From the NCBI GenBank assembly GCA_002269645.1, contig NIVC01002353.1, positions 117,575 to 181,574 on the forward strand: a stretch of 64,000 bases of DNA, in the 5' to 3' direction. Shown piece by piece: positions 90 to 60,416 of this stretch. A program made the translations under genes and the position numbers. The DNA is from Macrostomum lignano (Eukaryota). How positions within the stretch are numbered: the stretch's first letter is position 1; the number at the start of each line of letters is the position of its first letter. The notes beneath the pieces are model-generated. The model ran no database searches. It was given only the letters and a program-made list of their open reading frames with translations, and was not told the DNA's origin.

Positions 90-3000
90 TCACAGTTGCA
101 ACTGTTGCTGGCCGAATTGGTGCCGAGACTGCGTCATGGATGACATCGCAGTGCTGCTGTTGTGCTCCACTGACTGCGTCATGGACGACACTGCAGTTCT
201 GTTAACTTGTTGTACAGACTTTGACTGTGCCACAGACGACACCGTAGTGCTGTTGGTTTGCTGTGCCGACTGCGACTGCAATTGAGCAATGCAACTACTG
301 TCAGGTACTGTCAGGTATAAGCTAGCCACAAAGATCCACCAATTTCACAGCATTTTGCACTCCCTGCCCTAAGCGCCACTGGTTATTAGGTTCGAGTGAA
401 AATGCAGTTGAAACTGGCATCCACCACTATACAGTAGCATGCAATACTAAACATAACTTTAGTGTGCAGACAGACCGCACCAGCGGGCAAGCGCTTTTTA
501 ACATTCCATATTTAGGCTATTTCTACAGTACAGCAGGGCATGCAACAGAGAGCAATAAAACCTGCTACACGAGTAGGCGGTTAGGGAGACAGAGCAGCCT
601 ATAATAGCAGAGGAGCCTCCCTGCTACCGAAAATAGAAACGCGTGCGCGTTGCCGCGTGCGAGCAAGCCAGCTACTTTTGGCCTGTCGCGTCTGGCTTCG
701 CTTCGAATACGAATTGCGAATATCAGAGGCGCAAGCGTTGCGACTGAACACTTTTGTATAAGGAATTCTCGGCTAGATTTTTTTTCGCAATTTACTCAAG
801 GGGCTGCAAAGAGCGATAGAGAACGAGAAGACTCTTTCGTTCTCACGCGCGAAGCCTCTTGTTTTTTACTGCTTCTGAATTGCTACTAGTACACAAGCGA
901 AGAAGATTGTGGTAAGGGGTAAACAACTTACAAAAGAGCTCTGCGATTGTAACATGGAGTTCTGGACGCGGTTACCGCTATCGAGCGCCATTCCATCAAG
1001 TCTGAAAAATAATTTAACTTGTTTATAAAGACTGCAAAATTGGTATATGATCGTACAGCAAGTCGATAAAATACGCATGCACTCACCTAGAATCTTCTTC
1101 TATAGGTTGCGGCGTTTCATATCCTTGAGTACCGGATGGGAAAACGCTGCTTACTTGCTGTTGAAAGGCAGAAGTGTGGGCACCGGAAGAAGAATTTGAA
1201 AAAGTAGAGTGCGGAGGAACTTGTCTACTCAAAATATGTCTGCTGGCTATCGTGCGACTCGTCGTGACTGTGCCATCATCACTCGTGAATTGAAATTCCT
1301 GGTTCGAACTCTCCTCTTGGCCCTGCCAGCCAGAATCTGTTCTAGCCGTAATAGAGGAAAGCTGAGCGGAATCTTTTATGCTAGAACCACTGTCGGGACT
1401 GCTAAGTCGATCTCCATCTCCATCAAACGTTGATCTCTCTAAAGAATCTGATGTACTATTGGTTGTATAATCCGTTTCGTAGCGTCGCTTCACAACAGAC
1501 GAATCAAAACGCGAGCCAGAAGAGTAGGTGCGCATAGAAGTAGTGTCTTTGCGGTCAATAAAGTGATCAGAAGCTTTTAGGATTCCATGCTCTCTATTAA
1601 GCTCGTCAACATCTGAGCTGATGCCAGGGGGTTCTGGCGAAGCATCCATGCAAACTTGAAGACCAACACTTTTAACGTCTCTCTTAAGAAGTTCGGTAAT
1701 TATGTTCACCATCTCAGCAGCGCTAATACCATACGATTGGCGCAGACTCTGGAAAAACATCAGTCTTTGGCTCGACACGGTTGAAATACTGGTTGAGTTT
1801 GATGAGAAATTGTTTCTTTGATATTCATTTGATTCAGCTGACCTTGAAACAAGTTCTCGATCCTTGGGAGGCTCAGCATTAGGAACTGATTTTACTGCGG
1901 TACGAGTTTGCTTTCTGCCATCCTCAAATGATACATTCACACCAACTGACCGCTGCGCCGGTTTGGCCTCTTCAATAAAAATATTAATCGCCACATCTCT
2001 GCAAGGTGGCTTCACCATTAGGCCAACCGTTCTGCGGTGAACAGGTGCTGAACTTGGCTGCGATTCACGAATCCGGATAGTCTCCTGAACGAATGTTCGG
2101 CTTTCTAGCTCACTGACGACAGATTTAAGACGCGCAATCTCGCTTAAGTATTGCTCTTTCTCAGAAATATCCATTAATTCACGAGTCACTCGCTCCTTGA
2201 CTTTTCTGACACCTTGCTGTGTTCCGTGCTAGTCTTGTAAATTTCTGTCGTGTTCACTGTTGTATCGCCCTCTTTTTTACTTTTTTCAGGGCATAATGCA
2301 CTACGATTATCCTCATCAATAGGCAAGTCATTCTGTACATCAGTGCAAGCATCAATATGCTCGGGTGTATCGATTGGCTGAGTGCTGAATACAGAGTCTA
2401 CTAACGGATTAAGGATCGCATCTGTCTGCTCACACTTGTCACCAAACATCCAGCGAAAATCTGGCTCAAGTTCTACAAGCCGGCTGACGGACTTATCAAC
2501 TGTCTCAATAACAGGTTCACGCTTCTCTTTCTTAGGCTGATTTACTTGTGGGTCGTCTAACGGAGCTGGAATATCGACTTCGCTTATGGGCACCTTTTCA
2601 GGTTTTTCCGACTTTTCAGTTGGCTCACAAACGACAGGCAGATGTTCCGGTGAAATAAATTCTTCTAAAACAGAATCACGATCGGAAAATACATGCTGCG
2701 AAAAATCTTTGTAACGAGGAGCTTGCACATTAGGTTGAGATTTCGGTGTTAAATCTTCATTTTGTTCCGGGCTAGAATCTGACGACCCATCGCTGTTGTC
2801 TGGATCATTAGGTTCATCTGTCTTACTGGGAGGCGCATGAACAGTGGTGTTTCCAGTAGGTGTTAAATCGTCCTCAATTTCTGGGTCCGAATCTTCAGAA
2901 TCAGTAGGATCTTCGTTAGCATTGGGTGCCTCTACATCCTTGTGAGTGTTAGGTGGAAAACCCTCCTCAATTTCTGGATCCGATTCTTCAGAATCAGTAG

Positions 3001-4584
3001 GATCTTCGTTAGCATTGGGTGCCTCTACATCCTTGTGAGCGTTTGTTGGAGAACCCTCCTCAATTCCTGGATCCGAATCTTCAGAATCAGTAGGATCTTC
3101 GTTAGCATTGGGTGCCTCTACATCCTTATGGGTGTTCGGTGGAAAACCCTCATCGATTTCCGGATCCGATTTTTTTGAACCAGTAGAACCTTTGCTTGCC
3201 TTTGGGGCATGCACATCTTTATCGGTGCTGGGCGTGAAACCTTCATCGATTTCTGGACTCGAAGAATCTGAATCAGATGGATCATTGCGACCACCATGGG
3301 GTGCTTGTACATCATGTTGAGGGTTAGGCTGCAGCTCTTCATCAACTACCGGATCTGATTCGTTGGACTCCGGCTTATGGTTACTCGCTGGCGGAGCATG
3401 AACAGGCGCCTGAGAACTAGGCGTCATATTTTCGTCTATCTCTGATCCATCCGATAAAACAGGGTCCGGTTGCCAAACCTTGCTTGGAGGAGACTTTGCT
3501 TCTTGGCTTGTTTTTCGCTTGCTCGGAGATTCGCTAGAGGCCACAACCGAGCCCAAAAGTCCAGATGGAAAATCAGCCGTCTCAGTTGACTGGCTACGAT
3601 GTTCGAATAAGTTTTCATCAGTTCCCACATTCGCATTAGCATGAGGGACAGCTGGCTTTGGGAATGTTACCGGCTCGGTAGCTGTCGATTGAGTTCTGTG
3701 GGCATCACGGGCAGGCTCAGGTGGCTGCACATTGGAAGCAGACGACTCAGAGCCATGGCTACTAGACTTATCCTGTTGCAGCGTGCGAAGCAAATTCTGC
3801 AGCTCTGGCAGCTGACGCTCGATAGCGTCGAGACGAGCATTCTGTTTTTTCTTCGGAGATGGCTTTGGAGGCAATGGTGGCGGCACTTGGCTATTTTGCG
3901 AATCGCGCTCACGACTCTGTGCCCGCTCTGATCCTTTAGCTCGCTGCTTTTTATCTTTTTTTCTCTCTGCCTCATTGGCTTTCTCTTTACGTGCTTGACG
4001 AGCCTTTTTCCTTTCACTTTTTCCTTTCGGTTCTTGGCAGCTTCCTGCGCATTCTTTGCACCCGCAAGACTTTTAGCAGCAGCATCCTTAGCACCACTGC
4101 GCTGAAGACTTTGCTGACCCTCCTCGTTTCTCCCCTGCGCATCTAATCTTAAGACCGAGGCCTCTTGGCTATCACTCCGCTTCTGACCCTGCTCACCTTC
4201 CTCATTTCTCTCAGCCGAGTCATCTACCTGTGCTTCTTTTCGCACAGTCCTGCGCTCTTTCTTAGTGCCATAGGTAGCAAAGAAATCTCCAGAATCTTCT
4301 TGTCCACCATTTGCCTCGGCTGATGCGCCACTGAGTGCTGCCTGTCTGTCAGAGGCAGCTTGAGACGACTGGTTTCTACTCAGCGATTGACTTGCAGCCT
4401 GCAACTGATTGCTCTCACGCGAGTAGCTTGCGGCCTGAGAAGACCGCTGATTGGAATTTTGTGAAGACTGTTGAAACGTTTGTTCCTGCCTAGAGGACGA
4501 CTGATAATTGAAATTTGATGCCTCTGCTGAATAGTTATAGTTTTGGCTAGAATAGGCTGCACTTCTGCTTGCTGTTGACTGCAT
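90..4584 (-). CDS. Large low-complexity, acidic-repeat, coiled-coil protein. Exon about 4584-1087 (assembled in three frames) plus exon about 297-90. Weak KANK-like motifs.
   Basis: ORFs 3667-4584, 2186-3886 and 1083-2189 overlap end to end. Each join is repaired by adding one A to an A-run (near 4020 and near 2200). Donor AG|GTGAGT at 1087/1086 (phase 2) matches acceptor CTGACAG|T at 298/297, in frame with ORF 90-329. Motifs RTVGLMV, RDVAIN, RSVGVNV and KSVGLQV plus a coiled coil recall KANK proteins (inference only; no KN motif or ankyrins seen). Confidence 0.6.
2885..3165 (-). repeat. Three coding 93-bp (31-aa) repeats, DPEIDEGFPPNTHKDVEAPNANEDPTDSEDS
   Basis: TCCGA anchor recurs at 2886, 2979 and 3072 (period 93). 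Degenerate EIDE...P...VxAP copies flank the array in ORF 2186-3886. Confidence 0.9.
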
Positions 4585-7202: not shown

Positions 7203-7346
7203 TTAACTTTATATTTTCCAAGAGTCAGTAACATTTTTTTCCAACACCTCATAGAAATTGTCTTTATCAGAACTTTTCGACTTTAGATTTGAAAATCTAT
7301 TTTCGAATATAAGGATTTTTTTGTCTCAAAGTTGCGAGAGGGCAGC

Positions 7347-9023
7347 TTACGAACAGGACGGAAGAGTACATACATAGCTGGTCCGTGGTCCACTGGAAGT
7401 GTAGCTAGAATAAGTGGGATAGCTGCTGGAATAGTACGAACTGCTTCCGCACGATGGCAGACTCCATACATAGCTGGTCCGTGGTCCACTGGAAGTGTAG
7501 CTAGAATAAGTGGGATAGCTGCTGGAATAGTACGAACTGCTTCCGCACGATGGCAGACTCCATACGTAGCTGGTCCGTGGTCCACTGGAAGTGTAGCTAG
7601 AATAAGTGGGATAGCTGCTGGAATAGTATGAACTGCTTCCGCACGATGGCAGACTCCATACGTAGCTGGTCCGCGGTCCACTGGAAGTGTAGCTAGAATA
7701 AGTGGGATAGCTGCTGGAATAGTATGAACTGCTTCCGCACGATGGCAGACTCCATACGTAGCTGGTCCGTGGTCCACTGGAAGTGTAGCTAGAATAAGTG
7801 GGATAGCTGCTGGAATAGTATGAACTGCTTCCGCACGATGGCAGACTCCATACGTAGCTGGTCCGCGGTCCACTGGAAGTGTAGCTAGAATAAGTGGGAT
7901 AGCTGCTGGAATAGTATGAACTGCTTCCGCACGATGGCAGACTCCATACGTAGCTGGTCCGTGGTCCACTGGAAGTGTAGCTAGAATAAGTGGGATAGCT
8001 GCTGGAATAGTACGAACTGCTTCCGCACGATGGCAGACTCCATACGTAGCTGGTCCGTGGTCCACTGGAAGTGTAGCTAGAATAAGTGGGATAGCTGCTG
8101 GAATAGTATGAACTGCTTCCGCACGATGGCAGACTCCATACGTAGCTGGTCCGCGGTCCACTTGAATAGCTAGGGTAGTAGCTAGAATAGCGAGAGTAGT
8201 AGCTAGAGTAACTAGGGTAGTAGCTAGAATAGCGAGAGTAGTAGCTAGAATAGCGAGAATAGCTGGGGTAGTAGCTAGAATAGCGAGAATAGCTTGGGTA
8301 GTAGCTGGAATAGCGAGAATAGCTGGGGTAGTAGCTGGAATAGCGAGAATAGCTGGGGTAGTAGCTGGAATAGCGAGAATAGCTGGGATAGTAGCTGGAA
8401 TAGCGAGAATAGCTTGGGTAGTAGCTAGAATAGCGAGAATAGCTGGGATAGTAGCTGGAATAGCGAGAATAGCTTGGGTAGTAGCTGGAATAGCGAGAAT
8501 AGCTTGGGTAGTAGCTAGAATAGCGAGAATAGCTGGGATAGTAGCTGGAATAGCGAGAATAGCTGGGGTAGTAGCTGGAATAGCGAGAATAGCTTGGGTA
8601 GTAGCTAGAATAGCGAGAATAGCTGGGATAGTAGCTGGAATAGCGAGAATAGCTGGGGTAGTAGCTGGAATAGCGAGAATAGCTTGGGTAGTAGCTGGAA
8701 TAGCGAGAATAGCTGGGGTAGTAGCTGGAATAGCGAGAATAGCTGGGGTAGTAGCTGGAATAGCGAGAATAGCTGGGGTAGTAGCTGGAATAGCGAGAAT
8801 AGCTGGGGTAGTAGCTGGAATAGCGAGAATAGCTGGGGTAGTAGCTGGAATAGCGAGAATAGCTGGGGTAGTATCCGCTTGAACCGTAGCGACCCGATCC
8901 ATAGCTTCCGATTCCGCCTGATCCGTAGCCGGACCCGATACTCCTGGCTTGTGTGAGACCCTGGCAGCTGCCAGTGACAGCGGCAAGCAGCAACAGCACT
9001 CCGAGACAAAGCTTGATGTCCAT
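7347..9023 (-). CDS. Secreted Tyr/Ser-rich tandem-repeat structural protein, 558 aa, intronless
   Basis: Signal-peptide-like N-terminus MDIKLCLGVLLLLAAVTGSCQG, a short Gly/Ser/Tyr linker, about 21 x YYPSYSRYSS, then 8 full plus 1 partial 32-aa repeats. Repeat nucleotide variants are synonymous. TATA box upstream, AATAAA downstream. Confidence 0.85.
   Translation of the reverse strand: MDIKLCLGVLLLLAAVTGSCQGLTQARSIGSGYGSGGIGSYGSGRYGSSGYYPSYSRYSSYYPSYSRYSSYYPSYSRYSSYYPSYSRYSSYYPSYSRYSSYYPSYSRYSSYYPSYSRYSSYYPSYSRYSSYYPSYSRYSSYYPSYSRYSSYYPSYSRYSSYYPSYSRYSSYYPSYSRYSSYYPSYSRYSSYYPSYSRYSSYYPSYSRYSSYYPSYSRYSSYYPSYSRYSSYYPSYSRYSSYYPSYSRYSSYYPSYSRYSSYYSRYSSYYPSYSSYYSRYSSYYPSYSSGPRTSYVWSLPSCGSSSYYSSSYPTYSSYTSSGPRTSYVWSLPSCGSSSYYSSSYPTYSSYTSSGPRTSYVWSLPSCGSSSYYSSSYPTYSSYTSSGPRTSYVWSLPSCGSSSYYSSSYPTYSSYTSSGPRTSYVWSLPSCGSSSYYSSSYPTYSSYTSSGPRTSYVWSLPSCGSSSYYSSSYPTYSSYTSSGPRTSYVWSLPSCGSSSYYSSSYPTYSSYTSSGPRTSYVWSLPSCGSSSYYSSSYPTYSSYTSSGPRTSYVCTLPSCS
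7365..8160 (-). repeat. Coding 96-bp repeat (GPRTSYVWSLPSCGSSSYYSSSYPTYSSYTSS), 8 full plus 1 partial
   Basis: GGTCCG(C/T)GGTCC anchor recurs every 96 bp from about 7380 to about 8148. Confidence 0.95.
8244..8873 (-). repeat. Coding 30-bp repeat (YYPSYSRYSS), about 21 copies
   Basis: GTAGTAGCTGGAATAGCGAGAATAGCTGGG unit, two per 60-base line. Confidence 0.95.
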
Positions 9024-9090
9024 GATTGCGACGTCAAGCAGGTAAATTTAGTGATAAAGAAATTGTAAATTGGGTTAAGGTGGACGCTGG

Positions 9091-9134
9091 TTTTATATGA
9101 ATTTAAGGGGCCTAGCACCTGTCAGGTGCACCTG
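9091..9134 (-). promoter_or_regulatory. TATA box plus triple E-box cluster upstream of the Tyr/Ser-rich gene
   Basis: TATAAAA on the - strand at 9097-9091, about 70 bp before the ATG. CACCTG (9116), CAGGTG (9123) and CACCTG (9129) lie within 20 bp. Confidence 0.55.
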
Positions 9135-9989: not shown

Positions 9990-12847
9990 CAGCATCGCAT
10001 TCCGGACTACGATGAAGTCCACTACCCGCACCGTCGTGAGCAGGAGCTCAGCAACGTTCTCCAGCACCAGGTATGAAGGGACAATGACCAGAAGTACCCA
10101 TCGACACTATAGAGTTCTCCGATCCTTCCGTTGGGTCAAATTCAAAGTTATCGTCTACCATCCCTCCTGTTTGACAAAGACTTTAAAAGCGATAGTTAAA
10201 TGGCGTCTTCAGATTTATTGGTTTAACTTAACTTAAGCGTCCTGCCCTGACTCCAACCAAACCTGCTTCACCGCCCGAGCAGCAGCAGCTACCGCACTGA
10301 GACGGCCTCGCTGGAGACCCGGAACGTCCGTACGGTTGAGTCCAGCTACAGCTGCCTGTCCAACGAGCAGTTCAGCGGCTTCACGAGGCCAGCCATCATG
10401 GCTACCCATGGCAAGGACGAGTCTTCGGCCAGTCTGCAAGCCGGAGAGGCGGCGGGCGAGACCGAGACTGCCTGGCACAGCTACGTCCGAAGCCTGGAAC
10501 GGCGGCACAGAGAACGGAGCAGCAACAGCGGAGGCAGCCGGGACTGGCCAGCTCTGGCGGGCATTCGAGAGGCTCTGGTGAGGGCGGGGGGCTTGGAATC
10601 CACGCTTACTAGTACAACTGTATAAAGCTCCTGAGCCTGCCAAGCTATCAACTCTGTGATTTCGTCATTTGCGTTTGAAGTAAAGATAAATTAATGATGA
10701 TTCAAAACAGGTTTTAAGAGCTAATTAACAAGATATAATTAACTAAAGTAATAAACAATTATCTGATTGTATGAAGCTGACAACATTGAAAAAAAGAATA
10801 CAACCTTTCAAGGAACTTCAGTGCCCAGAGCCTGTAAATATTTTGCTCAAATAGAACGAGACAAAATATGAAAACTGCAAGCGAGGACACAGAGTGCGAG
10901 CAACCGACAGCAAAAACTTCAAAGGTAAAGCATAAAAGTGGATAAATGTAACGCTAAATGATTGCCTATAGCAACAATCTAATAACAGAAATTTCAGACA
11001 AAATGTCTGGGACTAAAATATAAATAAATATAGTTTAATCAAACAACCTTTTAGGCTCGGGTAAGCGGCAGAAAACTTATTAAATTCTAATTCAACCATC
11101 GGTCATTAGAAATCTTATAAAACTGAAGGGGTTGATTTAATGAACTGCTGTGCCAGCGCTGGGGTCGTCCCTTAAACCATAAAAATTCTCCAAAACGAAG
11201 CCCTGTATGCGGAAGGAATATTTATGGGGGCGAGCTTCAAGGCTGTGCCAAAACGCCTGGGATACAAAATTGTCCTCGGCTTACAGGGCCAACCACAGAG
11301 GCCCAGGTTTTGCGCGTGCCTGACAATGAGAGAAGGTCAGTTGTTCATGTGAGTGGCTGACAACGAGAGAGGGTCAGTTGTTCATGTGAGTGGCTGACAA
11401 TGAGAGAGGGTCAGTTGTTCATGTGAGTGGCTGACAATGAGAAGGTCAGTTGTTCATGTGAGTGGCTGACAATGAGAGAGGGTCAGTTGTTCATGTGAGT
11501 GGCTGACAATGAGAAGGTCAGTTGTTCATGTGAGTGGCTGACAATGAGAGAGGGTCAGTTGTTCATGTGAGTGGCTGACAATGAGGTCAGTTGTTCATGT
11601 GAGTGGCTGACAATGAGAAGGTCAGTTGTCCATGTGAGTGCCTGACAATGAGAAGGTCAGTTGTCCATGTGAGTGCCTGACAATGAGAGGGTCAGTTGTC
11701 CATGTGAGTGGCTGACAGTGAGAAGGTCAGTTGTCCATGTGAGTGCCTGACAACGAGAGAGGGTCAGTTGTCCATGTGAGTGGCTGACAATGAGAAGGTC
11801 AGTTGTCCATGTGAGTGCCTGACAATGAGAGGGTCAGTTGTCCATGTGAGTGGCTGACAGTGAGAAGGTCAGTTGTCCATGTGAGTGGCTGACAATGAGA
11901 AGGTCAGTTGTCCATGTGAGTGGCTGACAATGAGAAGGTCAGTTGTCCATGTGAGTGGCTGACAATGAGAAGGTCAGTTGTCCATGTGAGTGCCTGACAA
12001 TGAGAGGGTCAGTTGTCCATGTGAGTGGCTGACAGTGAGAAGGTCAGTTGTCCATGTGAGTGCATGACAATGCGAAGGTCAGTTGTCCATGTGAGTGCCT
12101 GACAATGCGAAGGTCAGTTGTTCATGTTAGTGCCTGACAATGAGAAGGTCAGTTGTCCATGTTAGTGCCTGACAATGAGAAGGTCAGTTGTCCATGTGAG
12201 TGCCTGACAATGAGAAGGTCAGTTGTCCATGTGAGTGCGTCTTTGAGGTCAGCAAAATGGCCTTTGATTTGAAGCAGCTCACAAGCCCCCAGCGACTAAG
12301 TGCGAGCCCTGATAACCATCTAAACTTACACGTACAGCTTTCGTGCTGGTCCTTGCACGGTTTACCCCAGTGTTGAATCTGGGAAAGTGAAGCAGAAGGA
12401 AGCCACACGCTGCAGAATTCAAACACTGATACGGGAAGCTTTCAGTTTATTAACACTAAACTGGCAATATCTCACCTTCTGGACTTCCGAGTTGCAAAGG
12501 ATTTTGTTTACCTGCATAATTAAAACAATATTGCACGCCAGCAAAGCATAAAATACGGTTGCGTTCTTACTGTTTTCTTTTGAGATTAAATGGGATTATT
12601 CTTCTCTCCTCTCTCATCGCCTCTCCCCTCTCCTCTCTCTCCTCCCAACTCTCCTCTCTTCTCTCTCTAGCCGCAGCCACGCGCTAGATTCAATATCTGG
12701 TCCTTAAGTTAAAAAAGCTTGCCGACCCATGGTCCAGAAGAGATACGCTAAGGTAATAGGAGACAGGAACAGCTGAAATTCATCTGGAACTTTGCCTGCC
12801 CGCGGGTCTCCAGCAGCATTTTCTAAACAATACAGCCTCAACCTCAG
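9990..12847 (+). CDS. Putative exons of an unknown multi-exon gene (about 9990-10070, about 10280-10577, possibly 12671-12752 and 12774-12847)
   Basis: Coding-like frames (HRIPDYDEVHYPHRREQELSNVLQHQ; SSYRTETASLETRNVRTVESSYSCLSNEQFSGF...IREAL) end at donors CAG|GTATGA (10070) and CTG|GTGAGG (10577). A long pyrimidine tract with AG ends at 12670 and is followed by an AAG|GTAATA donor. I could not close the frames consistently. Confidence 0.3.
11318..12238. repeat. Minisatellite, 35-39 bp unit GACAATGAGAAGGTCAGTTGTCCATGTGAGTGGCT, about 25 copies
   Basis: Direct tandem array. Length variation comes from an internal GA run. Confidence 0.95.
12600..12670 (+). repeat. CT-rich polypyrimidine tract ending in AG (probable splice acceptor)
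   Basis: (CTCT)-like run terminating in CTCTCTAG at 12670. Confidence 0.6.
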
Positions 12848-13210: not shown

Positions 13211-13975
13211 TCAGAGGCCCAGCAGGCGCGGAACGTCGGCCAGGGAGCTCACAATGTGCGTGGCGCCGGCCTCTCGCAGCAGCTCGGCGTTGCCGACCCC
13301 GCTGAGGACGCCGACGCAGGCGGCAAGTCCGGCGTTGCGGCCAAGTCGCATGTCGGTGCCGGTGTCTCCCACCATGACGGCGCGGGCGGGCGCGGTGCCG
13401 AGCCGGGAGCAGACGGAAAGCGCCGCGCTGGCGTGCGGCTTCGGCTGGACGTCCGGGTCGTCACCGCAGGCCGCCGCACCCACGAGGGACTGCAGGCCGC
13501 CGCGGTCGAGCGCCGCTTCCGTCTCGGCCCGGTCGTCCGAAGTGCAAAGGCCGATGAGGAGTCCCGCAGCGGTCAGTCGCTCGAACGTCTCTCTGGTACC
13601 ATCAATGAAGCGAAGGCGACCGCGGTCAAGCTCGCAGCCGAAGGTGACGCGGCGCACGGTGGCCTCGGCGAGCTCGGCGCTGACACCGCTCTCAACGGCC
13701 AGCTGCACGAGCGCATCAGCGATGTCCTTCTTGGTGCCCTCTGCCAGCAGACCGGGGCCCGTGCGCCGGGTCTCGGGGTCCACACCGAGGCGCCGCAGGA
13801 TGGGCAGTTGAAGGTCCTGACGGTCTAGAAGCCGGGTGATCTCGCTGGCCACCTCCTCGGCCCAGGGCGACCACATGGCATGGAAACAGACCACCGTGCC
13901 GTCCTTGTCAAACAGCACGCAGTTAATGTCGCTGAGAGGCTGCTCCAGCTCCAGCTGCGGGGACTCCACGGGCAT
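13211..13975 (-). CDS. HAD-superfamily phosphatase (subfamily IA, phosphoglycolate-phosphatase-like), 254 aa, intronless
   Basis: Motif I FDKDGT, motif II LCTSD, motif III PKP and motif IV VGDTGTD. ATG at 13975 is preceded by acceptor-like CCTCAG|AAAA. Confidence 0.85.
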   Translation of the reverse strand: MPVESPQLELEQPLSDINCVLFDKDGTVVCFHAMWSPWAEEVASEITRLLDRQDLQLPILRRLGVDPETRRTGPGLLAEGTKKDIADALVQLAVESGVSAELAEATVRRVTFGCELDRGRLRFIDGTRETFERLTAAGLLIGLCTSDDRAETEAALDRGGLQSLVGAAACGDDPDVQPKPHASAALSVCSRLGTAPARAVMVGDTGTDMRLGRNAGLAACVGVLSGVGNAELLREAGATHIVSSLADVPRLLGL

Positions 13976-25870: not shown

Positions 25871-28800
25871 ATGAGCAATAAAAAGTTTCAAGAATTCATA
25901 AAACAGCTGGATGGCCTCTGGGAGGTAAGCTAGAACTACTCATTGTCTAAGTGCTGCATATTATATTAATTCTGGGATCAGCAGCCAACTGTAACTCCCC
26001 ATCTGCTTGCAGATTAACAAAGTGAAGTTCAAAGAGGAGTTTGTCAGCACTGAGGCAAAGAGTGGCCTGCATCAATTTGAGTAAGTCGCTGCCTTGAGTA
26101 GGTCAGTGAGACACTGAAGTTAATCAATGTAGTTATTAAGTGTTTTGCTATTATTTTTGTATCACTAATAAGATGATGAGGCATTTGCATTATCTGACGA
26201 TGAGTATAGTTACTCTTGCCATTTACCCACGGCATTGGTAGCATACGAGCGTATTTTATAAGCAATTATCTGCACTATTGTGCACTGCTCAAAATTGGTG
26301 GTTTGGATCACTACTGCTATCTGTCTTTTTAACACCATTCTTGCCTTTTAATAAGATTCAGAAAGATAATTCCCATGCAGCCTTCGGTTGATCTTCTCAT
26401 TAGCCTCCATCATCATGCCTCTATCATATAATCCCCATCATATCTATGCCCATGTATCCCATCATATCTATGCCCATGTATCCCATCATATCTATGCCCA
26501 TGTATCCCCATCATATATCCCTATCATGATTTATCCTCATCATAAGCCTCCATCACATATATCCAATCACATATCCCCACATCATCATGTATCTCCCCCT
26601 CTCATCGCAGGCACCTGAAGGACCCCGACTGGCGCGTGAGTTTCCGCGAGACTCCGTCGGGCTGGTCGGTGCAGTGGTTCCCGCCGGCCGGCGACTCCGA
26701 CGAGGCCCGGGGCGCGCCGCCGCCGGGCTCGGAGCTGTGCCGCCTGTTCGAGCTCACCCAGCTCGACCTGGAGGAGGCCGGCCCCGAGGTGGTCCGCAGC
26801 CGGGCCAAATTCGCAGCCGTCTTTTCCAGCGCCGACCGCGAGGTGTCCGCGCCGGCCAAGTTCATCTGCGAGAAGAAGACCGGCCGGCAGCTGCCTAAGA
26901 AGCTGCGGTTCCAGTTCGGCTCGCTGCAGATCACTAAGGTGAGCAACCTGTGCACCACGTCTCCGCCTCACTGGGTTGCTGGGACCCAGCCTCATGGGTC
27001 ACATAGTGGGATTTCCCCAGCCTCTATAAGTCACGGGGTGGTATTTCCCCATCCTCTATAAGTCACGGGGTGGTATTTCCCCATCCTCTATGAGTCACGG
27101 AGTGGTATTTCCCCAACGGAGTGGTATTTTCCCAGCCTCTATGAGTCACGGAGTGGAATTTCCCCAGCCTCTATGAGTCACGGAGTGGTATTTCCCCAGC
27201 CTGTATGAGTCACGGAGTGGAATTTCCCCAGCCTCTATGAGTCACGGAGTGGGATTTTCCCAGCCTCTAGGGAAATACAGAGTGGGATTTCCCCAGCATG
27301 GCTATGAGTCACGGAGTGGGATTTTCCAGCCTCTATGAGTCCGGAGTGGTATTTCCCAGCCTCTATGAATCACGTAGTGGGATTTCCCAGCCTCTATGAG
27401 TCACGGCGTGGGATTTCCCCAGCCTCTATGAGTCACGGAGTGGGATTTTCCCAGCCTCTATGAGTCACGTAGTGAGATTTCCCCAGCCTCTATGAGTCAC
27501 GGAGTGGGATTTTCCCAGCCTCTATGAGTCACGGAGTGGGATTTCCCCAGCCTCTATGAGTCACGGCGTGGAATTTCCCCAGCCTCTAGGGAAATACGGA
27601 GTGGGATTTCCCCAGCATGGCTATGAGTCACGGAGCCTTCCATACCCAAGCGACCGTAAATAATCAGAGTTTTTCACCGCTGCTCGGGAGTAGCCAGTTG
27701 CGAACTTGTACTTTAAACCTTACAAATTTCGATTCTCTCGCCCATCCCGCCTGCCCTTAGCTGAGCCGCTGCCTTCCCGCCTACAGCGACTGTGCGGTGT
27801 CGCTTCTGCCGCTGCTTGAGGAGCGGTTCCGCTGCGACCTCACCCTGCGCGGCTCAAACGGCAGCGAGTTTAGTTGCCATGGCGACGTGATCCGCCTCGT
27901 TGCCGGGGACGCCGCCCTGGCTTGGCTGCAGCAGCCGCCCGGCCGCGACCCGCAGCTGCTGCGCGTCTTCCTGCATTTCTGCTACGCCGCCGCTCTGCCG
28001 CAGGGCCTCGGCGCCGAAGAGTCTCGCGAGCTGATGGAGCTGGCCCAGCCTCTTGCCTGCCCTGCCTTCCGAGCGGCTCTAAAGCGGCACCTGCGGCGGG
28101 CCGGAAGCAGCGCCCGCGTGGCCAGGGAGCTGCAGGCTACTGAGACTGCGCTGGCCCGCCACATCGATGTGAGAGGGCTGCCGTTGATACCCCTGCTTGT
28201 CTGTTTTGGTCACTGGATCCCCCCTTGAGCCAGTTAGTCACTGGATCCGCCCCCTGAGCCAGTTAGTCACTGAATCCGCCCCCTGAGCCAGTTAGTCACT
28301 GAATCCGCCCCCTGAGCCAGTTAGTCACTGAATCCGCCCCTAAGCCAGTTAGTCACTGGATCCGCCCCCTGAGCCAGTCAGTCACTGAATCCGCCCCCTG
28401 AGCCAGTTAGTCACTAGATCCGCCCCCTGAGCCAGTCAGTCACTGAATCCGCCCCCTAAGCCAGTTAGTCACTGAATCCGCCCCCTGAGCGAGTTAGTCA
28501 CTGAATCCGCCCCCTGAGCCAGTCAGTCACTGAATCCGCCCCCTGAGCCAGTTAGTCACTGAATCCGCCCCCTGAGCCAGTCAGTCACTGAATCCGCCCC
28601 TGAGCCAGTTAGTTAGTCACTAGATCCGCCCCCTGAGCCAGTTAGTCACTGAATCCGCCCCCTGAGCCAGTTAGTCACTGAATCCGCCCCCTGAGCCAGT
28701 TAGTCACTGAATCCGCCCCCCTGAGCCAGTTAGTCACTGAATCCGCCCCCTGAGCTAGTTAGTCACTGAATCCGCCCCCTGAGCCAGTCAGTCACTGGAT

Positions 28801-31800
28801 CCGCCCCCTGAGCCAGTTAGTCACTGAATCCGCCCCCTGAGCCAGTTAGTCACCGGATCCGCCCCCCATCCGGCCCAGGACCTGCGGGATCCGTTCTCGC
28901 TGGCAGCGGAGCCGGGCCGCCTGGCCGGCCAGCTGGAGACCTTCCTGCGCGACTGCCTGGCCGCGGCGGCCCGCCTGCTGCTGTGCGCGGCCCTGTACGA
29001 GTCCATGCCTGGCGCTGAGCGGTCGCGGGTGCAGCAGCTGTTCCGGGACCGGGCCGGCCGCCTGGCCGAGTCGCAGGCGCAGCTGCTCCACCGGCTGCAC
29101 TCGGCGATGCGGGCGGTACCGGCCGAGCGGCGGGCCGAGCTGAGCCAGCTGTGCCTGGACCGGCTGGAGCCGCTGGCCTCCGGGCTGCTGGAGTGCGCGC
29201 TGCAGCTTGCGGACCTGCTGAGCTCCGGCTGCCGGCAGGGCCTCCTGAGCGGCGGCGGGGTGCTGCTGTTCAAGGACTGGCGGGCGCTGTTGTCCGCGCC
29301 TAAAAAGTGAGCACCTTTTGCAGTCAGGAGTTGGCTTGAATACCGTTAGCTGCAGTACCTTAATGAGGCTCAAGGGAGTTTTGAAATTATTGTAAAGAAT
29401 CTGCTCTCAATAGAATTTCGGAAGCGTCTCGCTACTACTATTAGTAGTTTCCTGCCTGGCATTTTAACCCCCTCTCAAACCCGCCGGCTGCAGGTGCTCC
29501 ACCCTCCGCACCCAGCTGGAGGCCATGCGCTCCGAGTACCGCCAGGCCGGGCCCGAGCGCCTGTCCGAGCTGTTCGACCACCTGCTGGCCGAGCTGGCCG
29601 GCCTGGACAACCGGCAGCGGCCGTCAGGTGGCGGCGCCAGCGGCGGTTTTCGCGTCTCCGCCCGCTGGGAGAAGCGCGCCAAGAAGGCGGCCAGGCGGGC
29701 CGGCCTGGCGGTGCGGCTGCTCCGCTCCGTGCGCGGCGAGCCGGCGGCTGCGGAGTTTTGGCGCCGTCTGGCCGCCTGCCTGCCGCGCGGCTGCCACGAG
29801 GCGCTCGGCCTGCTGCGCGAGCTCGCCCTGCTGCCGCCCGACTTCGCCGCTCCCGACGCCGCCGACTCTGCCGCGGTGGCCGCTTCTGATATGGACGCCG
29901 CGGCGGCCTCCGTCTCCGCCGTGTCTCTGGAGGAGGCCGAGGACGCGTCTGGCGCCTCCGCTTCCGCCACTGCGACTGCCGCTGCCGCTGTTATGCCCAG
30001 CGAGCTGCAGGTTCGTTTTGATGACCCTGCCTTGTTGCTAGGGCCTCTGGATATGAGATTTTTGCTAGGGTCTCTGGATGTGAGAGTGTTGCTAGGGTCT
30101 CTGGATGTGAGATTGTTGCTAGGGTCTCTGAAAATGGGATTGTTGCCAAGGCCTCTGGATATTGGATTGTTGCTAGGGTCTCTGGATGTGAGATTGTTGC
30201 TAGGGTCTCTGAAAATGGGATTGTTGCCAAGGCCTCTGGATATTGGATTGTTGCTAGGGTCTCTGGATGTGAGATTGTTGCTAGGGTCTCTGAAAATGGG
30301 ATTGTTGCCAAGGCCTCTGGATATTGGATTGTTGCTAGGGCCTCTGGATGTGAGATTGTTGCTAGGGGCTCTAAATGTGAAATTGTTGCTAGGGACTCTG
30401 GATGTGAGATTGTTGCTAGGGTCTCTGAAAATGGGATTGTTGCCAAGGCCTCTGGATATTGGATTGTTGCTAGGGTCTCTAGATGTGAGATTGTTGCTAG
30501 GGTCTCTGAAAATGGGATTGTTGCCAAGGCCTCTGGATATTGGATTTTTGCTAGGGCCTCTGGATGTGAGATTGTTGCTAGGGGCTCTAAATGTGAGATT
30601 GTTGCTAGGGTCTCTGAAAATGGGATTGTTGCCAAGGCCTCTGGATATTTGATTGTTGCTAGGGCCTCTGGATGTGAGATTGTTGCTAGGGGCTCTAAAT
30701 GTGAGATTGTTGCTAGGGGCTCTGGATGTGAGATTGTTGCTAGGTTCTCTGAAAATGGGATTGTTGCCAAGGCCTCTGGATATTGGATTGTTGCTAGGGC
30801 CTCTGGATGTGAGATTGTTGCTATGGGCTCTAAATGTGAGATTGTTGCTAGGGTCTCTATATATGGGATTGTTGCTAAGGCCTCTGGAAATGGGGTTGCA
30901 GCTAAGGAACTCTTTAAGTGCCAGGGCATTGTCATTAGGGACATTCGAAAGAGGATCACTATATGGTACTAGAGTGAGGGTTATGAAAGCTGTAGAGGAC
31001 AATGTTGATTTTGAAGCACTAAAAAGAATTGTTTCTAGACAAATTGAATATTACGCTCGTATATCCCGTTCCTCACTCCTCAGCTGTGCCTGACCCGACT
31101 GTGGCGCGGCGAGCTGTCCCAGCCAGCTCCCGACCTGCTGGTGACGACCTGCGACGAGCGCAGCTTCCGCGTGCACTCGCTGGTGCTGGCGGGCCGCTGC
31201 CCCTGGATTCGGCGGGTGCTGCAGTCCGGCATGTGCGAAGCGCTGGAGCGGCACCTGCGGCTGCCGGACTGCGAGGGGCCGCTGGTTGAGCGGCTGCTGG
31301 AGTTTCTGTACACTGGCGTGCTGCCGGTGGGGAGGACGCCTCCACGGACTGGCTGGTGCGGCTGGGGATGCCAGGGCTGGACTGGGGAGTTTTCAGCCTC
31401 TGGCAGGCTGCAATAGTGTGACCACTAATAGGATAGTCATACTTGAGCACATTTGGTTGCTAAGGAAGTTTCTAATAGGTTCAAGGGAACCATCCTTGGT
31501 TGCTAGGGACGACAACCCCTGGTTTCATACAGAGGCGCCGTCCGTGAGTGCTAGAGGTGCCACACTGGTTGCTAGGGACGCACACTGGTTGCTAGGATCG
31601 CACTGGTTGCTAGGGGCGCACACTGGTTGCTAGGGGCGCACACTGGCACACTGGGTCACCACTCTGAGTTCCAGTGCTCTTCAATTAATTGGGGCACACT
31701 GAATTGGTTGCTAGGGCCGCCCCTTGGTTGCTAGGGTCGCCACTCTGTTTAAGATTGCTTGATGCAATGATGGTTGATTTTTGCTGTCCCTCAACCGCAG

Positions 31801-32148: not shown

Positions 32149-32578
32149 AGTGTCGGGCTGATACAAGAGTGACAGGCTGATACGAGTATAAGAATGAAAA
32201 GCTGATATAGAGGAGTAACAGGCTGATATAGGAGTGACAGGCTGATATAAAGGAGTGACAGGCTGATATATAGGAGTGACAGGCTGACATCAGGGTGACA
32301 GATACCAGCGTGCCAATGTGTCCCGCACCCCGCAGCTCGGCCAGCTCAGCCAGGCCCTCCGAGACCGCCTGACGCAGACCGAGTCGGCCGGCAGCCAAGA
32401 CGGCAGCAGCGCGGACTCAGAGCAGCTCTGGTCGACCCTGCCACGCGACAACTTCGAAGAGAAGTTGGGCGAATTCCGCGCCATCGTTGGTCCGGAGCCG
32501 TCGGACAGCGTGCTGCTGGACTTGCTGGTCACGGCCGACGGAGACCTGAACCGGGCCCTGAACTACTACCTGTCTTGA
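25871..32578 (+). CDS. Tandem-BTB (BTB ... BTB-BACK) protein with C-terminal UBA/CUE-like domain. 9 exons (25871-25924, 26013-26080, 26611-26938, 27761-28168, 28879-29306, 29494-30010, 31084-31326, 31801-31998, 32336-32578), about 828 aa
   Basis: All eight introns are GT-AG with matching phases. BTB signatures CDLTLRGSNGSEFSCH...LRVFLHFCY and DLLVTTCDERSFRVHSLVLAGRCPW...LLEFLYTG...LLLADRFELERLSKIC. C-terminus FRAIVG...LLDLLVTADGDLNRALNYYL is UBA-like. Confidence 0.85.
26990..27640. repeat. Intronic minisatellite, 32-33 bp unit GAGTCACGGAGTGGGATTTCCCCAGCCTCTAT, about 20 copies
   Basis: Direct tandem array in BTB gene intron 3. Confidence 0.92.
28222..28866. repeat. Intronic minisatellite, 29-bp unit GAGCCAGTTAGTCACTGAATCCGCCCCCT, about 22 copies
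   Basis: Tandem array whose last copy runs into the acceptor at 28878. Confidence 0.95.
30030..30900. repeat. Intronic 27-bp minisatellite with 3-4-unit higher-order structure (TGTTGCTAGGG... core)
   Basis: Alternating units ...CTCTGGATGTGAGAT, ...CTCTGAAAATGGGAT and TGTTGCCAAGGCCTCTGGATATTGGAT. Confidence 0.92.
32020..32300. repeat. Intronic degenerate GAGTGACAGGCTGATA repeats with an embedded (TA)n microsatellite near 32116-32145
   Basis: Directly visible. Confidence 0.85.
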
Positions 32579-33625
32579 ACCACTTCCTGTCCTGAACTAC
32601 TTACTACCTGACCTGAACTATTACCTGTCCTGAACTACTTACTACCTGACCTGAACTATTACCTGTCCTGAACTATTACCTGTCCTGAACTATTACCTGT
32701 CCTGAACTATTACCTGTCCTGAACTATTACCTGTCCTGAACTATTACCTGTCCTGAACTATTACCTGTCCTGAACTACTACCTGTCCTGAACTACTACCT
32801 GTCCTGATCTATTACCTGTCCTGATCTATTACCTGTCCTGATCTATTACCTGTCCTGAACTACTACCTGTCCTGAACTATTACCTGTCCTGATCTATTAC
32901 CTGTCCTGAACTATTACCTGTCCTGATCTATTACCTGTCCTGATCTATTACCTGTCCTGATCTATTACCTGTCCTGATCTATTACCTGTCCTGAACTATT
33001 ACCTGTCCTGAACTACTACCTGTCTTGAACTATTACCTGTCCTGAACTACTACCTGTCCTGATCTATTACCTGTCCTAATCTATTACCTGTCCTGATCTA
33101 TTACCTGTCCTGATCTATTACCTGTCCTGAACTATTACCTGTCCTGATCTATTACCTGTCCTGAACTATTACCTGTCCTGATCTATTACCTGTCCTGATC
33201 TATTACCTGTCCTGATCTATTACCTGTCCTGATCTATTACCTGTCCTGATCTATTACCTGTCCTGAACCACTCTCTGTCCTGATCTATTACCTGTCCTGA
33301 ACTACTACCTGTCTTGAACCACTTCCTGTCCTGAACTACTTACTACCTGACCTGAACTATTACCTGTCCTGAACCACTCTCTGTCCTGATCTATTACCTG
33401 TCCTGAACCACTTCCTGTCCTGATCTATTACCTGTCCTGAACCACTTCCTGTCCTGATCTATTACCTGTCCTGAACCACTTCCTGTCCTGATCTATTACC
33501 TGTCCTGAACCACTTCCTGTCCTGATCTATTACCTGTCCTGAACCACTTTCTGTCCTGATCTATTACCTGTCCTGAACCAGTTCCTGTCCTGATCCGGGT
33601 CCTGGACTACTTCTACCTGTCCTGA
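32579..33625. repeat. 17-bp minisatellite CTGAACTATTACCTGTC immediately after the BTB stop codon, about 60 copies
   Basis: The unit matches the last codons CTGAACTACTACCTGTC-TTGA. Confidence 0.95.
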
Positions 33626-34927: not shown

Positions 34928-35227
34928 CTAACCCTAACCCTAACCCTAACCATAACCCTAAATTTAATATTTGTCTATGAGTTTTTGCATGATGCTTCTA
35001 TGATTTATTGCATAACGCTTCCATTATTTTTTGCATGACGCTTCCATGATTTTTCGCATGACGCTTCCATTATTTTTGCATGACGCTTCTATGATAAACA
35101 TTTTCAATAAGCTACATGAGCTAAGTTATAAGCTACCCTAACCCTAGCCCTAACCCGAATCTTAACGCTATAACCCTGAACCTAACGCTAAACCTAAACC
35201 CTAACACCAACCCTAACACTAACCCTA
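34928..35227. repeat. Degenerate interstitial (CCCTAA)n-like tracts flanking short GCATGACGCTTC repeats
   Basis: CTAACCCTAACCCTAACCCTAACCATAACCCTA at 34928-34960 and degenerate copies at 35135-35227. Confidence 0.7.
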
Positions 35228-36757: not shown

Positions 36758-42749
<5,992 letters not shown>

Positions 42750-46315: not shown

Positions 46316-46843
46316 TGTGGCATTATGGATGAGTGTGGGACGATGCATACGAGGGTGTGGGATGATGGCCTTAAAGTCTGGGAATCGGGGATGATGATTG
46401 TGCGGCTATAAGCACTATACATAGGGTCAGTGTGGTCGCACCGGAAGTGACCTTCATAACAAATAATTATTTTGCATTCCGCTGCTTAAATACGCTGTCC
46501 TCCGCTTGTCCCTGCATGCTGTGCCCGATTTGCTAAACAATTTCTACTGCTAGTAATGATAAATATATGAACAAATACCAAGCATAACTACTGTGTAAGT
46601 AAGTAGTCTGTGCAATCATATAACTCTTGGTTGTCTCGCATTATCGATTTTGTTTTCAAGTGCTGCAACTTGCAAGTGTTTCGTACATCCGTAATCTGGA
46701 GAAGTCTGTCAGATGCTGTTTTTTCAGGAACTTCCTAAGCTTCCCAAATCAAATGCGAGTGAAGTTGCCATATTTACAATTTTGCCAGTTCAAATCTTCC
46801 AATCCTACTCGCACTTCTTAAGGCCTACTTGATTACACGGCTG

Positions 46844-47612
46844 GTGCTCCGCTCGCTTCAGGTATTCAGTGCTGAGCCTTCAGTGACAGGTGCTCCGCTC
46901 GCTTCAGGTATTCAGTGCTGAGCCTTCAGTGACAGGTGCTCCGCTCGCTTCAGGTATTCAGTGCTGAGCCTTCAGTGACAGGTGCTCCGCTCGCTTCAGG
47001 TATTCAGTGCTGAGCCTTCAGTGACAGGTGCTCCACTCGCCTCAGGTATTCAGTGCTGAGCCTTCAGTGACAGGTGCTCCGCTCGCCTCAGGTATTCAGT
47101 GCTGAGCCTTCAGTGACAAGTGCTCCACTCGCCTCAGGTATTCAGTGCTGAGCCTTCAGTGACAGGTGCTCCGCTCGCCTCAGGTATTCAGTGCTGAGCC
47201 TTCAGTGACAAGTGCTCCACTCGCCTCAGGTATTCAGTGCTGAGCCTTCAGTGACAGGTGCTCCGCTCGCCTCAGGTATTCAGTGCTGAGCCTTCAGTGA
47301 CAAGTGCTCCACTCGCCTCAGGTATTCAGTGCTGAGCCTTCAGTGACAGGTGCTCCGCTCGCCTCAGGTATTCAGTGCTGAGCCTTCAGTGACAAGTGCT
47401 CCACTCGCCTCAGGTATTCAGTGCTGAGCCTTCAGTGACAGGTGCTCCGCTCGCCTCAGGTATTCAGTGCTGAGCCTTCAGTGACAGGTGCTCCGCTCGC
47501 CTCAGGTATTCAGTGCTGAGCCTTCAGTGACAGGTGCTCCGCTCGCCTCAGGTATTCAGTGCTGAGCCTTCAGTGACAAGTGCTCCACTCGCCTCAGGTA
47601 TTCAGTGCTGAG
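46844..47612. repeat. Highly homogeneous 46-bp tandem array GTGCTCCGCTCGCCTCAGGTATTCAGTGCTGAGCCTTCAGTGACAG, about 16.5 copies
   Basis: Period 46 (46844, 46890, ...). No spacers. Confidence 0.96.
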
Positions 47613-48300: not shown

Positions 48301-48814
48301 TAATTCCCATAGCAACAACGGCATCCATTAGCAGTGCCGCCACTCACTCTGCTCCGGTTTCTACTCAATGCTTAATGCGCGCGCACCTCTGACTCTCGGG
48401 GAAAAAACCCGGGTTAGATTTATTTTTTGACCGCACTGATTCGGTGGTTGTGCGCAAGATTTCACCTGGGGCTCGAGCGATTCTCACACATGATTGCCAA
48501 ACCCCACGGCACCGTGGTGCAGCTTGACAATGAAAAAGTCAGGGCCGCTGTGCACCCTTTGTGACTTTGAGTTTGTGTGCGAGCTCAGGGGTCAGCGGAA
48601 TGTTCATGACTGCTGGCTTTCTTGCCGGCCTCTGATCGACTGCAGCCTTGATTAGTGTCAGTTCTAAAGCCACTTTGATGCATTTCCAAATCTCACAGCT
48701 TTTTCCTCCATGTCATAGTAAATTCAAATTCAAAAGCCCCTTCTCAAACATCACAAACCCAAACACGGACGCATTTCAGGTGTGTTCAACTCGACTGACG
48801 CTCAATTCTTTCCG

Positions 48815-51800: not shown

Positions 51801-52473
51801 AACATCGTGCAGTTTCTCAAGACCGAGCGCTCAGCGGAGAACGGGTTCTGCATCTTCACGGAGCTCATCGCAGGGTGCAGCCTCCTCGATCTGATGAACC
51901 GGCTGAACAAGCCGTTCGATGAGCCAGCAGTGAGGCGTTTCTCGCATCAAGTGAGCTGTCACTCCTGCCTCTGCCACAGTGTGAATACTGAGCGAACAGC
52001 TGACTCTTCGACCCCGAACCCCTTTGCAGATCTGCAGGCGCTCAACTTCCTGCACTGTGAGCACATCGTCCACCGAGACATCAAGTGCTCCAATATCATG
52101 CTCACCCACGAGAGCGTCATCAAGCTGATCGACTTCGGACTCGCAAAGGAAATCGTCTCAGCAGCGCAGGGAGCCGCGACCTACACCCTCGGAACTGTTC
52201 ACTTCATGGCCGCAGAGCTGCTTCTTGATGACGAGAATGACCGGCTGGTGTACACTCCGAAGACAGATGTGTGGGCGTTCGGCTGCACCGTGTTCGAGAT
52301 GCTGGAGAGGAGGCCACCAAAAGGTCAGAGTGACTTCAAAGGGCATGCCGCAGCTGCCAGACGGGACCTCCGACACTCTGAGAGATTTCTACCGGCGCTG
52401 CGTGATGAAGGAGCCTGGAGAGCGGGCGGATACTGCGGAGCTGCTGCGACACAGCTTCCTGCAGAGCGGGTAA
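48815..52473 (+). pseudogene. Ankyrin-repeat/MAP3K-like kinase, copy 1. Ankyrin exon 48780-50774, kinase exons 51580-51950 and 52030-52473; several frame breaks (pseudogene or assembly error)
   Basis: About 17 ankyrin repeats (T..H.AA). Donor AG|GTGAGC (phase 2) matches acceptor TTCCAG|A, giving R-APASLDPSFSSW. Kinase motifs GEGGFGKVY, VAVK, HRNIVQF, HRDIKCSN, DFG, GT..FMA.E and DVWAFGCTVFEM. Frame breaks at about 49400 (8-nt insertion), 51625, 52030 and 52320. Confidence 0.75.
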
Positions 52474-60212: not shown

Positions 60213-60416
60213 TTAGCCGCACTAATTCGGTAGTCTTGAGATTTGTGAGTTTGTGCCTGCGTGCGAGCCACCCTGATACATTCCGAAATTTTGCAGATTA
60301 CATTGTCAATCTCATGGCAATCAAGGGACATTCGATGCAAAGCCCCTCAATTCTCAAACACAAACACGGACGAATTGCAGGTCGTGTTCAACTCGACTGA
60401 CGCTCAATTCTTTCCG

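Follow-up and report, generated by a model that had tools for sequence, protein, structure and literature searches.

Architecture of a tyrosine/serine repeat gene from Macrostomum lignano

The 64-kb stretch of the Macrostomum lignano genome analyzed here (part of contig NIVC01002353.1, hereafter referred to as the window) carries at positions 7347-9023 exactly one minus-strand open reading frame (ORF) of 558 codons, with its ATG at 9023-9021 and its TAA stop codon at 7349-7347. The deduced protein begins with a signal-peptide-like segment and continues with two repeat arrays, a long run of perfect Tyr/Ser-rich decapeptides (block A) and a set of 32-residue units (block B). The best explanation for this arrangement, as judged from the DNA and its translation, is an intronless and lineage-restricted gene whose product would be the precursor of a secreted structural protein. 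A first-pass annotation of the window had described a signal peptide, about 21 copies of YYPSYSRYSS and eight units of 32 residues that each carry a single Cys and a single Trp; ORF analysis, translation and Tandem Repeats Finder showed its coordinates and repeat layout to be exact. The elements of the gene are listed below from its 5'- to its 3'-side.

9091-9097, minus strand: TATAAAA box, 74 nucleotides (nt) 5' of the ATG; found by motif search, a consensus match only
8958-9023, minus strand: start codon in its Kozak context (AATCATGG) and signal-peptide-like residues 1-22 (MDIKLCLGVLLLLAAVTGSCQG)
8874-8957, minus strand: non-repetitive Gly/Ser/Tyr linker, residues 23-50 (LTQARSIGSGYGSGGIGSYGSGRYGSSG), from translation
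8244-8873, minus strand: block A, 21 perfect copies of YYPSYSRYSS, residues 51-260, from repeat finding and translation
8163-8243, minus strand: three degenerate, in-frame seven-residue variants of the decapeptide (YYSRYSS/YYPSYSS), residues 261-287
7395-8162, minus strand: block B, eight identical 32-residue units (SGPRTSYVWSLPSCGSSSYYSSSYPTYSSYTS), residues 288-543, from repeat finding and translation
7347-7394, minus strand: truncated and diverged ninth unit (SGPRTSYVCTLPSCS, residues 544-558) and the TAA stop codon
7197-7202, minus strand: AATAAA polyadenylation-signal consensus, 145 nt 3' of the stop codon; a consensus match only

The ATG is the first start codon 3' of an in-frame stop and possesses an A at position -3 and a G at position +4. 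Tandem Repeats Finder reports a period of 30 nt (23.6 copies, 8164-8873) that is abutted by an array with a period of 96 nt (8.3 copies, 98% matches, 7369-8166). Each decapeptide contains exactly one Arg, and each block B unit contains one Cys, one Trp and one Arg per 32 residues.

The composition of the protein is extreme. Ser (37.8%) and Tyr (26.5%) dominate the 558-residue polypeptide, followed by Pro (8.8%), Arg (6.1%) and Gly (5.4%), and block A consists of 40% Tyr, 40% Ser, 10% Arg and 10% Pro; the longest Ser run anywhere in the protein comprises three residues. The predicted mature chain (536 residues, about 62 kDa, isoelectric point 9.3) contains 210 Ser (39%) and 148 Tyr (28%), and 34 basic residues (Arg plus Lys) face not a single Asp or Glu. 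Asn, His and Lys are missing from the mature chain as well, the sole Lys and the sole Asp of the protein being located in the signal peptide, so that the reported lack of acidic residues in the repeats extends to the entire mature chain.

The predicted signal peptide (residues 1-22) displays the n-, h- and c-regions expected for a member of the secreted class of proteins (MDIK / LCLGVLLLLAAV / TGSCQG): a charged n-region is followed by a hydrophobic core of 12 residues, and small residues occupy positions -3 and -1. When the 109 ATG-initiated ORFs of at least 60 codons in the window were subjected to a heuristic signal-peptide test, the Tyr/Ser ORF alone passed it. In the AlphaFold2 model of the protein, a helix is placed at residues 3-14, within the signal-peptide-like segment.

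A translated gene or a chance reading frame

We consider it very probable that the locus represents a real, translated gene for a secreted protein. The alternative to be weighed at this level is that the locus is no gene: in a genome rich in minisatellites, two adjoining arrays would lack stop codons in one frame by luck. Such a coincidence has to be taken seriously in a window with 73 Tandem Repeats Finder rows, in which other arrays also yield long spurious ORFs (positions 30032-30892 are open in three frames) and in which a second sense frame at the very same locus is open over 611 codons.

The pattern of variation among the repeats speaks against it. All six columns that vary among the full repeat copies, three in the 30-mer (TAC/TAT, CCC/CCA, TCC/TCT) and three in the 96-mer (CCG/CCA, TAC/TAT, TCA/TCG), are third codon positions and are synonymous in the 558-codon frame. 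The chance that all six changes would be silent is about 9e-5 under uniform substitution and 8e-4 when transition-specific rates are used. Read in the two other sense frames, the same variants give rise to three to five different peptides or to stop codons; the other open sense frame encodes five peptide variants among 20 units, and silence is hence confined to the 558-codon frame. Furthermore, the terminal ninth unit has kept the sequence Leu-Pro-Ser-Cys despite four consecutive third-position changes. The claim of the first-pass annotation that every variant is silent stands for the full repeats but not for the truncated last unit, to which the replacements W>C, S>T and G>S are confined. The repeat periods of 30 and 96 nt are divisible by three, and the degenerate units at the end of block A correspond to the decapeptide minus 9 nt, which makes them in-frame deletions.

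Other coding solutions for the locus were considered and rejected. The antisense frames contain between 8 and 139 stop codons each, which rules out an antisense gene. The second open sense frame (7283-9118, 611 residues, rich in Ala, Ile, Thr and Pro) shows non-synonymous repeat variation and has no ATG/signal-peptide start. Since the codon counts of the Tyr/Ser ORF are dominated by its repeats, a comparison with the neighboring genes carries no information.

Taken together, the silent variation, the retention of Leu-Pro-Ser-Cys, the in-frame indels, the signal-peptide-like N-terminus (unique in the window, and placed directly ahead of the arrays and in frame with them), the correctly positioned Kozak, TATA and AATAAA elements and the antisense stops argue for a real coding gene rather than a minisatellite, and they leave the chance reading frame with a slight probability. 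In keeping with the first-pass annotation, the silent sites also support the view that the encoded secreted decapeptide-repeat protein has been under purifying selection.

Origin and predicted structure of the two repeat blocks

About 43 nt at the 3' end of the 96-nt unit, which encode YSSSYPTYSSYTS, can be aligned to the 30-nt repeat with a score of 36, as compared with 13.3 +/- 3.9 for codon-shuffled sequences. By this alignment, block B is a diverged piece of block A, which gained a 19-residue insert (GPRTSYVWSLPSCGSSSY) bearing the Trp and Cys residues, and which was subsequently amplified as a higher-order unit. Silent variants in the middle of block A recur every three units, a rhythm left by unequal crossing-over, and both arrays are either young or homogenized.

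AlphaFold2 predictions were made from single sequences, without an alignment. In the model of the whole protein, residues 21-290, including block A, are predicted to be disordered, with predicted local distance difference test (pLDDT) values of 25-30; the pLDDT of block B ranges between 58 and 75, and three beta-strands are modeled in each of its units. Modeled alone, block B adopts a beta-solenoid with a pLDDT of 78 and a predicted template modeling score (pTM) of 0.72, the other four models reaching 61-67. The strands of each modeled rung are RTSYVWS, YYSSS and TYSSYTS, and the intervening turns are LPSCGSS, YP and SGP. Foldseek searches with both models retrieved nothing significant; the best match was the curli protein CsgA (E 0.0096, template modeling score about 0.1), and the weak neighbors are all solenoids (CsgA, FapC, SufD, tapirins, ice-binding proteins). 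AlphaFold2 is on record for modeling perfect repeats as solenoids that are unrealistic in spite of their high confidence (PMC11795689), and we treat the solenoid fold of block B as a hypothesis rather than as a result. The two-block design noted beforehand is thus present in the protein; what has been added to it are the partial derivation of block B from block A and a solenoid model that is possibly artificial.

Searches for homologs

The Tyr/Ser protein is an orphan in the collections searched, which do not contain the proteins of this genome. A look-up of the exact 558-residue sequence returned no record, and a word-indexed search of 5.8 billion proteins gave no match at E<=1e-3. A hmmscan against Pfam-A (E<=1) retrieved only a sub-threshold, nine-residue match to ELAPOR1_C and assigned the protein to no family; the TES domain of trematode eggshell proteins (PF08034 / IPR012615) was absent in the same scan. 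No match was found in the PDB by sequence, in metagenome contigs of the Joint Genome Institute by degenerate DNA patterns (representing the block B core and two decapeptides), or in the literature by the repeat string.

When 1.84 billion cluster representatives were scanned in full with HMMER, 216 nominal matches were obtained. Those inspected are unrelated proteins that had been aligned through a ten-residue period (e.g., ALSEDPSLDR, AKHYPDVTEG, EAIPGSSRHS) and were rejected as homologs. The same holds for the sole protein with a high Ser plus Tyr content among 150 listed matches (P0229), which resembles a fungal GH16 enzyme and has acidic YSSYYP[EQ][VA][ST] nonamers. A homolog resembling the mussel protein fp-1 was not found in the HMMER scans either. 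A close match to an already described protein family had been named beforehand as a finding that would speak against the candidate glue, eggshell or cement protein; the Pfam, protein and PDB searches uncovered no true homolog.

Comparison with known precursors of hardened secretions

With 148 Tyr among its 536 mature residues and a predicted signal peptide, the protein shows the richness in Tyr that typifies the generic class of secreted Tyr-crosslinked precursors, a functional grouping rather than a family of homologs, and it shares with this class only its generic features, the signal peptide and the extreme Tyr content. In its presumed way of working, it would be most similar to fp-1, to the Pc-type cement proteins and to eggshell precursors, without being a member of any of these groups.

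Like Mefp-1 and Mgfp-1 of Mytilus, the Tyr/Ser protein is predicted to be secreted, is strongly basic and consists of long decapeptide arrays that contain Pro-Ser-Tyr and are devoid of acidic residues. Mefp-1, a coating protein built from AKPSYPPTYK repeats that contains 3,4-dihydroxyphenylalanine (DOPA), uses Tyr as its reactive residue (PMC4275877). The two proteins are not homologous, however; P-S-Y, three of ten positions, is all that the repeat units have in common. The Lys-rich decapeptide of fp-1 has no counterpart in YYPSYSRYSS, in which Arg is the basic residue; the Tyr/Ser protein has twice the Tyr and four times the Ser of Mefp-1, and a single Pro per unit that offers no hydroxyproline or dihydroxyproline context. 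Mefp-1, for its part, lacks a second block with Cys and Trp.

The cement proteins Pc-3A/B, Pc-1 and Pc-2 of sabellariid tubeworms are likewise repetitive secreted proteins with a very limited amino acid diversity. In these animals, phosphorylated Ser and Tyr (as DOPA) carry the chemistry of the cement, which is stored in condensed granules, and Pc-1 and Pc-2 are basic proteins with Tyr-rich repeats (PMC4275877). The poly-phosphoserine protein Pc-3 contains >80 mol% Ser and becomes extremely acidic, and the basic and acidic partners of the cement are separate proteins, whereas the Tyr/Ser protein alternates Ser, Tyr and Arg within one chain. Pc-3-type proteins are marked by >60-80 mol% Ser, arranged as long Ser stretches that Tyr interrupts; the Tyr/Ser protein, with 37.8% Ser and no more than three Ser in a row, lacks this hallmark.

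Trematode TES precursors also possess a signal peptide and are rich in Tyr; they are stored in globules and crosslinked into the tanned shell (PMC11727788). In one form from Calicophoron daubneyi, Tyr is accompanied by Cys and the tail is rich in Cys, Pro and Tyr, a feature echoed by the Tyr-plus-Cys design of the Tyr/Ser protein (PMC11727788). Otherwise, the differences are substantial: the trematode proteins are non-repetitive, have a mass of about 29 kDa, contain 7-15% Tyr and possess Lys and Asp, whereas the Tyr/Ser protein is fully repetitive, contains 28% Tyr, and lacks the TES domain and, in its mature chain, Lys, His and acidic residues. The coccidian proteins GAM56 and GAM82 are secreted precursors with distinct Tyr-rich regions as well, which are deposited in wall-forming bodies and crosslinked via dityrosine or DOPA (PMC2726925). 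They stem from Apicomplexa, show no homology, and their Tyr-rich regions, 55-77 residues in length, are embedded in ordinary sequence and are not tandem repeats.

A likeness of a different kind concerns the prion-like domains of the FUS family, which are disordered, rich in Tyr, Ser and Gly with [G/S]Y[G/S] motifs, cooperate with Arg partners, and undergo phase separation driven by their composition. The FUS-family proteins bind RNA inside the cell and have no signal peptide; the resemblance is confined to physical chemistry.

A putative role in a tyrosine-crosslinked material

In our view, the chances are about even that the Tyr/Ser protein is the precursor of a tyrosine-crosslinked extracellular material, such as an egg covering, a cement or a similar hardened secretion; this proposal is derived from composition and analogy alone. 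The signal peptide would direct the protein into the secretory pathway, where the disordered block A, in which every decapeptide contributes four Tyr and one Arg, may form dense secretory droplets through Tyr-Tyr and Tyr-Arg contacts (pi-pi and cation-pi interactions). A Tyr/Arg "sticker" composition of the block A type is known to drive condensation in prion-like domains. Once the protein has left the cell, a tyrosinase or peroxidase from an unlinked gene would oxidize Tyr to DOPA/quinone or to dityrosine and thereby tan the material; the regularly spaced Cys residues of block B might contribute disulfide or cysteinyl-DOPA links; block B perhaps stacks as a beta-rich, amyloid-like core; and the abundant Ser residues are perhaps phosphorylated or O-glycosylated. 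Because the mature chain is devoid of Lys and His, crosslinks would need Cys, Tyr-Tyr coupling or partner proteins.

The predicted disorder of block A and the predicted beta-rich nature of block B fit a role in such a material, and biological precedents exist. Vitelline proteins of trematodes are Tyr-rich secreted precursors of the tanned shell, with Cys-substituted variants in C. daubneyi (PMC11727788), the tanning of the planarian capsule requires tyrosinase (PMC5544531), mussel and tubeworm adhesives rely on DOPA/phosphoserine chemistry (PMC4275877), and GAM56/82 are Tyr-rich secreted precursors of the coccidian wall (PMC2726925).

Several points weigh against a crosslinked material. The single Lys of the Tyr/Ser protein resides in the signal peptide and the protein has no His. 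DOPA proteins are usually rich in Lys, Gly or His, and the nucleophiles that quinones usually react with are Lys and His. The protein, HMMER and PDB searches yielded no homolog from which a function could be transferred, and the beta-solenoid of block B may be an AlphaFold2 artifact. No tyrosinase or peroxidase was detected among the ORFs of at least 150 codons or among the eight window ORFs scanned against Pfam, and no other secreted repeat gene among the large ORFs of the window, smaller exons not having been scanned exhaustively in either case; the partner oxidase need not be linked to the Tyr/Ser gene.

A more far-reaching version of the crosslinked-material proposal, which we regard as rather improbable, is that the protein represents a recent, taxon-restricted "all-in-one" biomaterial precursor that arose through minisatellite expansion, in which a coacervating and oxidatively curing block A is fused to an amyloid-like solenoid with a Cys/Trp ladder. 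If this were true, one chain would unite roles that are split over several proteins in mussels and tubeworms.

Alternative functions

An unlikely alternative is that the protein belongs to an untanned secretion in which Ser is the functional residue and Tyr is incidental. Such a secretion could be a hydrophilic coat with heavy O-glycosylation or phosphorylation, a mucus, a lubricant, or a matrix that binds calcium or minerals. Ser and Thr together make up 43% of the chain, the lack of Asn would permit only O-linked glycosylation, block A is predicted to be disordered, and phosphoserine-rich secreted proteins are well documented in the form of Pc-3 and fp-5 (PMC4275877). However, four Tyr residues per decapeptide have been perfectly kept through 21 units, which is hardly incidental, and Ser runs resembling those of Pc-3 are absent. 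Mucins, moreover, are typically rich in Thr and Pro.

Improbable, in our assessment, is a function that resides in a folded block B, whose flat Ser/Thr/Tyr faces would bind ice, mineral, chitin or cellulose, or which would serve as a functional amyloid scaffold, with the disordered block A acting as a tether. The scores of the best block B model, its three strands per 32-residue rung and the exclusively solenoid character of the weak Foldseek neighbors (among them CsgA curli, FapC and ice-binding proteins) are compatible with such a function. It is weakened by the lack of a significant structural match, by the lower pLDDT of the other four models, and by the tendency of AlphaFold2 to invent solenoids for perfect repeats, here with single-sequence input.

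Cleavage of a polyprotein behind every single Arg, which would release many copies of a Tyr-rich decapeptide (YSSYYPSYSR) in the manner of coccidian wall precursors, is very improbable, despite exactly one Arg in each decapeptide and one in each 32-residue unit, as the Tyr/Ser protein contains neither dibasic or furin-type sites nor spacer peptides, and monobasic processing at S-R-Y is, to our knowledge, not an established motif. The model for such a route would be GAM56/82, which are cut into small Tyr-rich peptides before they are crosslinked (PMC2726925).

Genomic neighborhood

The neighbors of the Tyr/Ser gene are ordinary and functionally unrelated genes. The following features were recognized in the window.

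1083-4584, minus strand: low-complexity ORFs rich in Ser, Asp, Glu and Pro (368, 566 and 305 codons), without a Pfam match
13.2-15.8 kb, minus strand: HAD hydrolase and sugar transporter
36.7-46.2 kb, plus strand: SPCA Ca-ATPase and RabGGT-beta
About 48782-52508 and about 60261-63881, plus strand: two tandem ankyrin-repeat/kinase paralogs

The low-complexity ORFs, which contain acidic repeats of 93 nt (31 residues) at 2857-3283, probably make up a single large and disordered acidic protein, encoded directly downstream of the Tyr/Ser gene. Each ankyrin-repeat/kinase paralog encodes an array of 4-6 double ankyrin repeats of 71 residues (period 213 nt) and, after it, a protein-kinase domain; the pair looks like a locally duplicated family. 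An exon of the SPCA gene is about 70% identical alike to proteins of molluscs, cestodes, rotifers and sponges. The HAD hydrolase (13214-13975, minus strand) is 74% identical to the HAD hydrolase encoded by a transcript-like contig of 1031 nt (L001) in the Logan assembly of SRR31628403; its further matches, from nematodes and a trematode, show about 40% identity. No other close relative of a window gene was found, and SRR31628403 probably derives from a related organism. A second Tyr-rich ORF was not found in the 64-kb window, and Rfam and tRNA scans of it gave no matches.

The genome of M. lignano is repeat-rich and intron-poor, a style that the genes of the window resemble (PMC5730564). None of the best database matches was an M. 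lignano protein, and a spliced-leader sequence of the species is missing from the window, an absence that carries no information. The minisatellites recorded by Tandem Repeats Finder have periods of 11-49 nt and often 20-60 copies (e.g., 11316-12237, 28209-28866, 32557-33593, 40421-40801, 41698-42420 and 46843-47612). Most of them occupy introns or intergenic DNA that separates GC-rich exons; the GC content is about 60% in exons and 30-35% in spacers. A 27-nt minisatellite at 29464-31002 (nine-residue period, about 32 copies), which adjoins a stretch with 66% GC, can be read without stops in three frames, both strands being involved, and yields ORFs of 512, 375 and 322 codons. Both strands of a 39-nt repeat at 58597-59172 (9.4 copies) are open, and one of the frames would encode a Cys/Ala-rich unit of 13 residues (CAACAEGESVWFL). 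Interstitial telomere-like arrays of TTAGGG-type hexamers, (CTAACC)n and (ACCCTA)n, are present in AT-rich intergenic DNA at 34928-35227. Within the SPCA locus, about 51 copies of CTGT (38384-38590) form a microsatellite that is probably intronic and that lengthens an exon-derived ORF by a spurious LSVC/LSIY translation.

Significance

Secreted, Tyr-rich repeat precursors of hardened secretions are known already; what appears to be new here, by analogy with them, is a member without homologs and with an extreme composition. If the proposed role is wrong, the Tyr/Ser protein would be one more orphan low-complexity secreted protein, of which invertebrate genomes contain many. If it is right, the protein would represent a very simple natural design of a curing material, composed of a Tyr/Ser/Arg/Pro decapeptide and a derived block bearing Cys and Trp, which could easily be synthesized and tested as a coacervating polymer that is curable by tyrosinase. 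It would also add a family without homologs to the few sequenced precursors of tanned egg coverings and cements from outside the mussels, tubeworms and trematodes. The locus also illustrates how a minisatellite-rich genome can yield a repeat protein on which selection acts.

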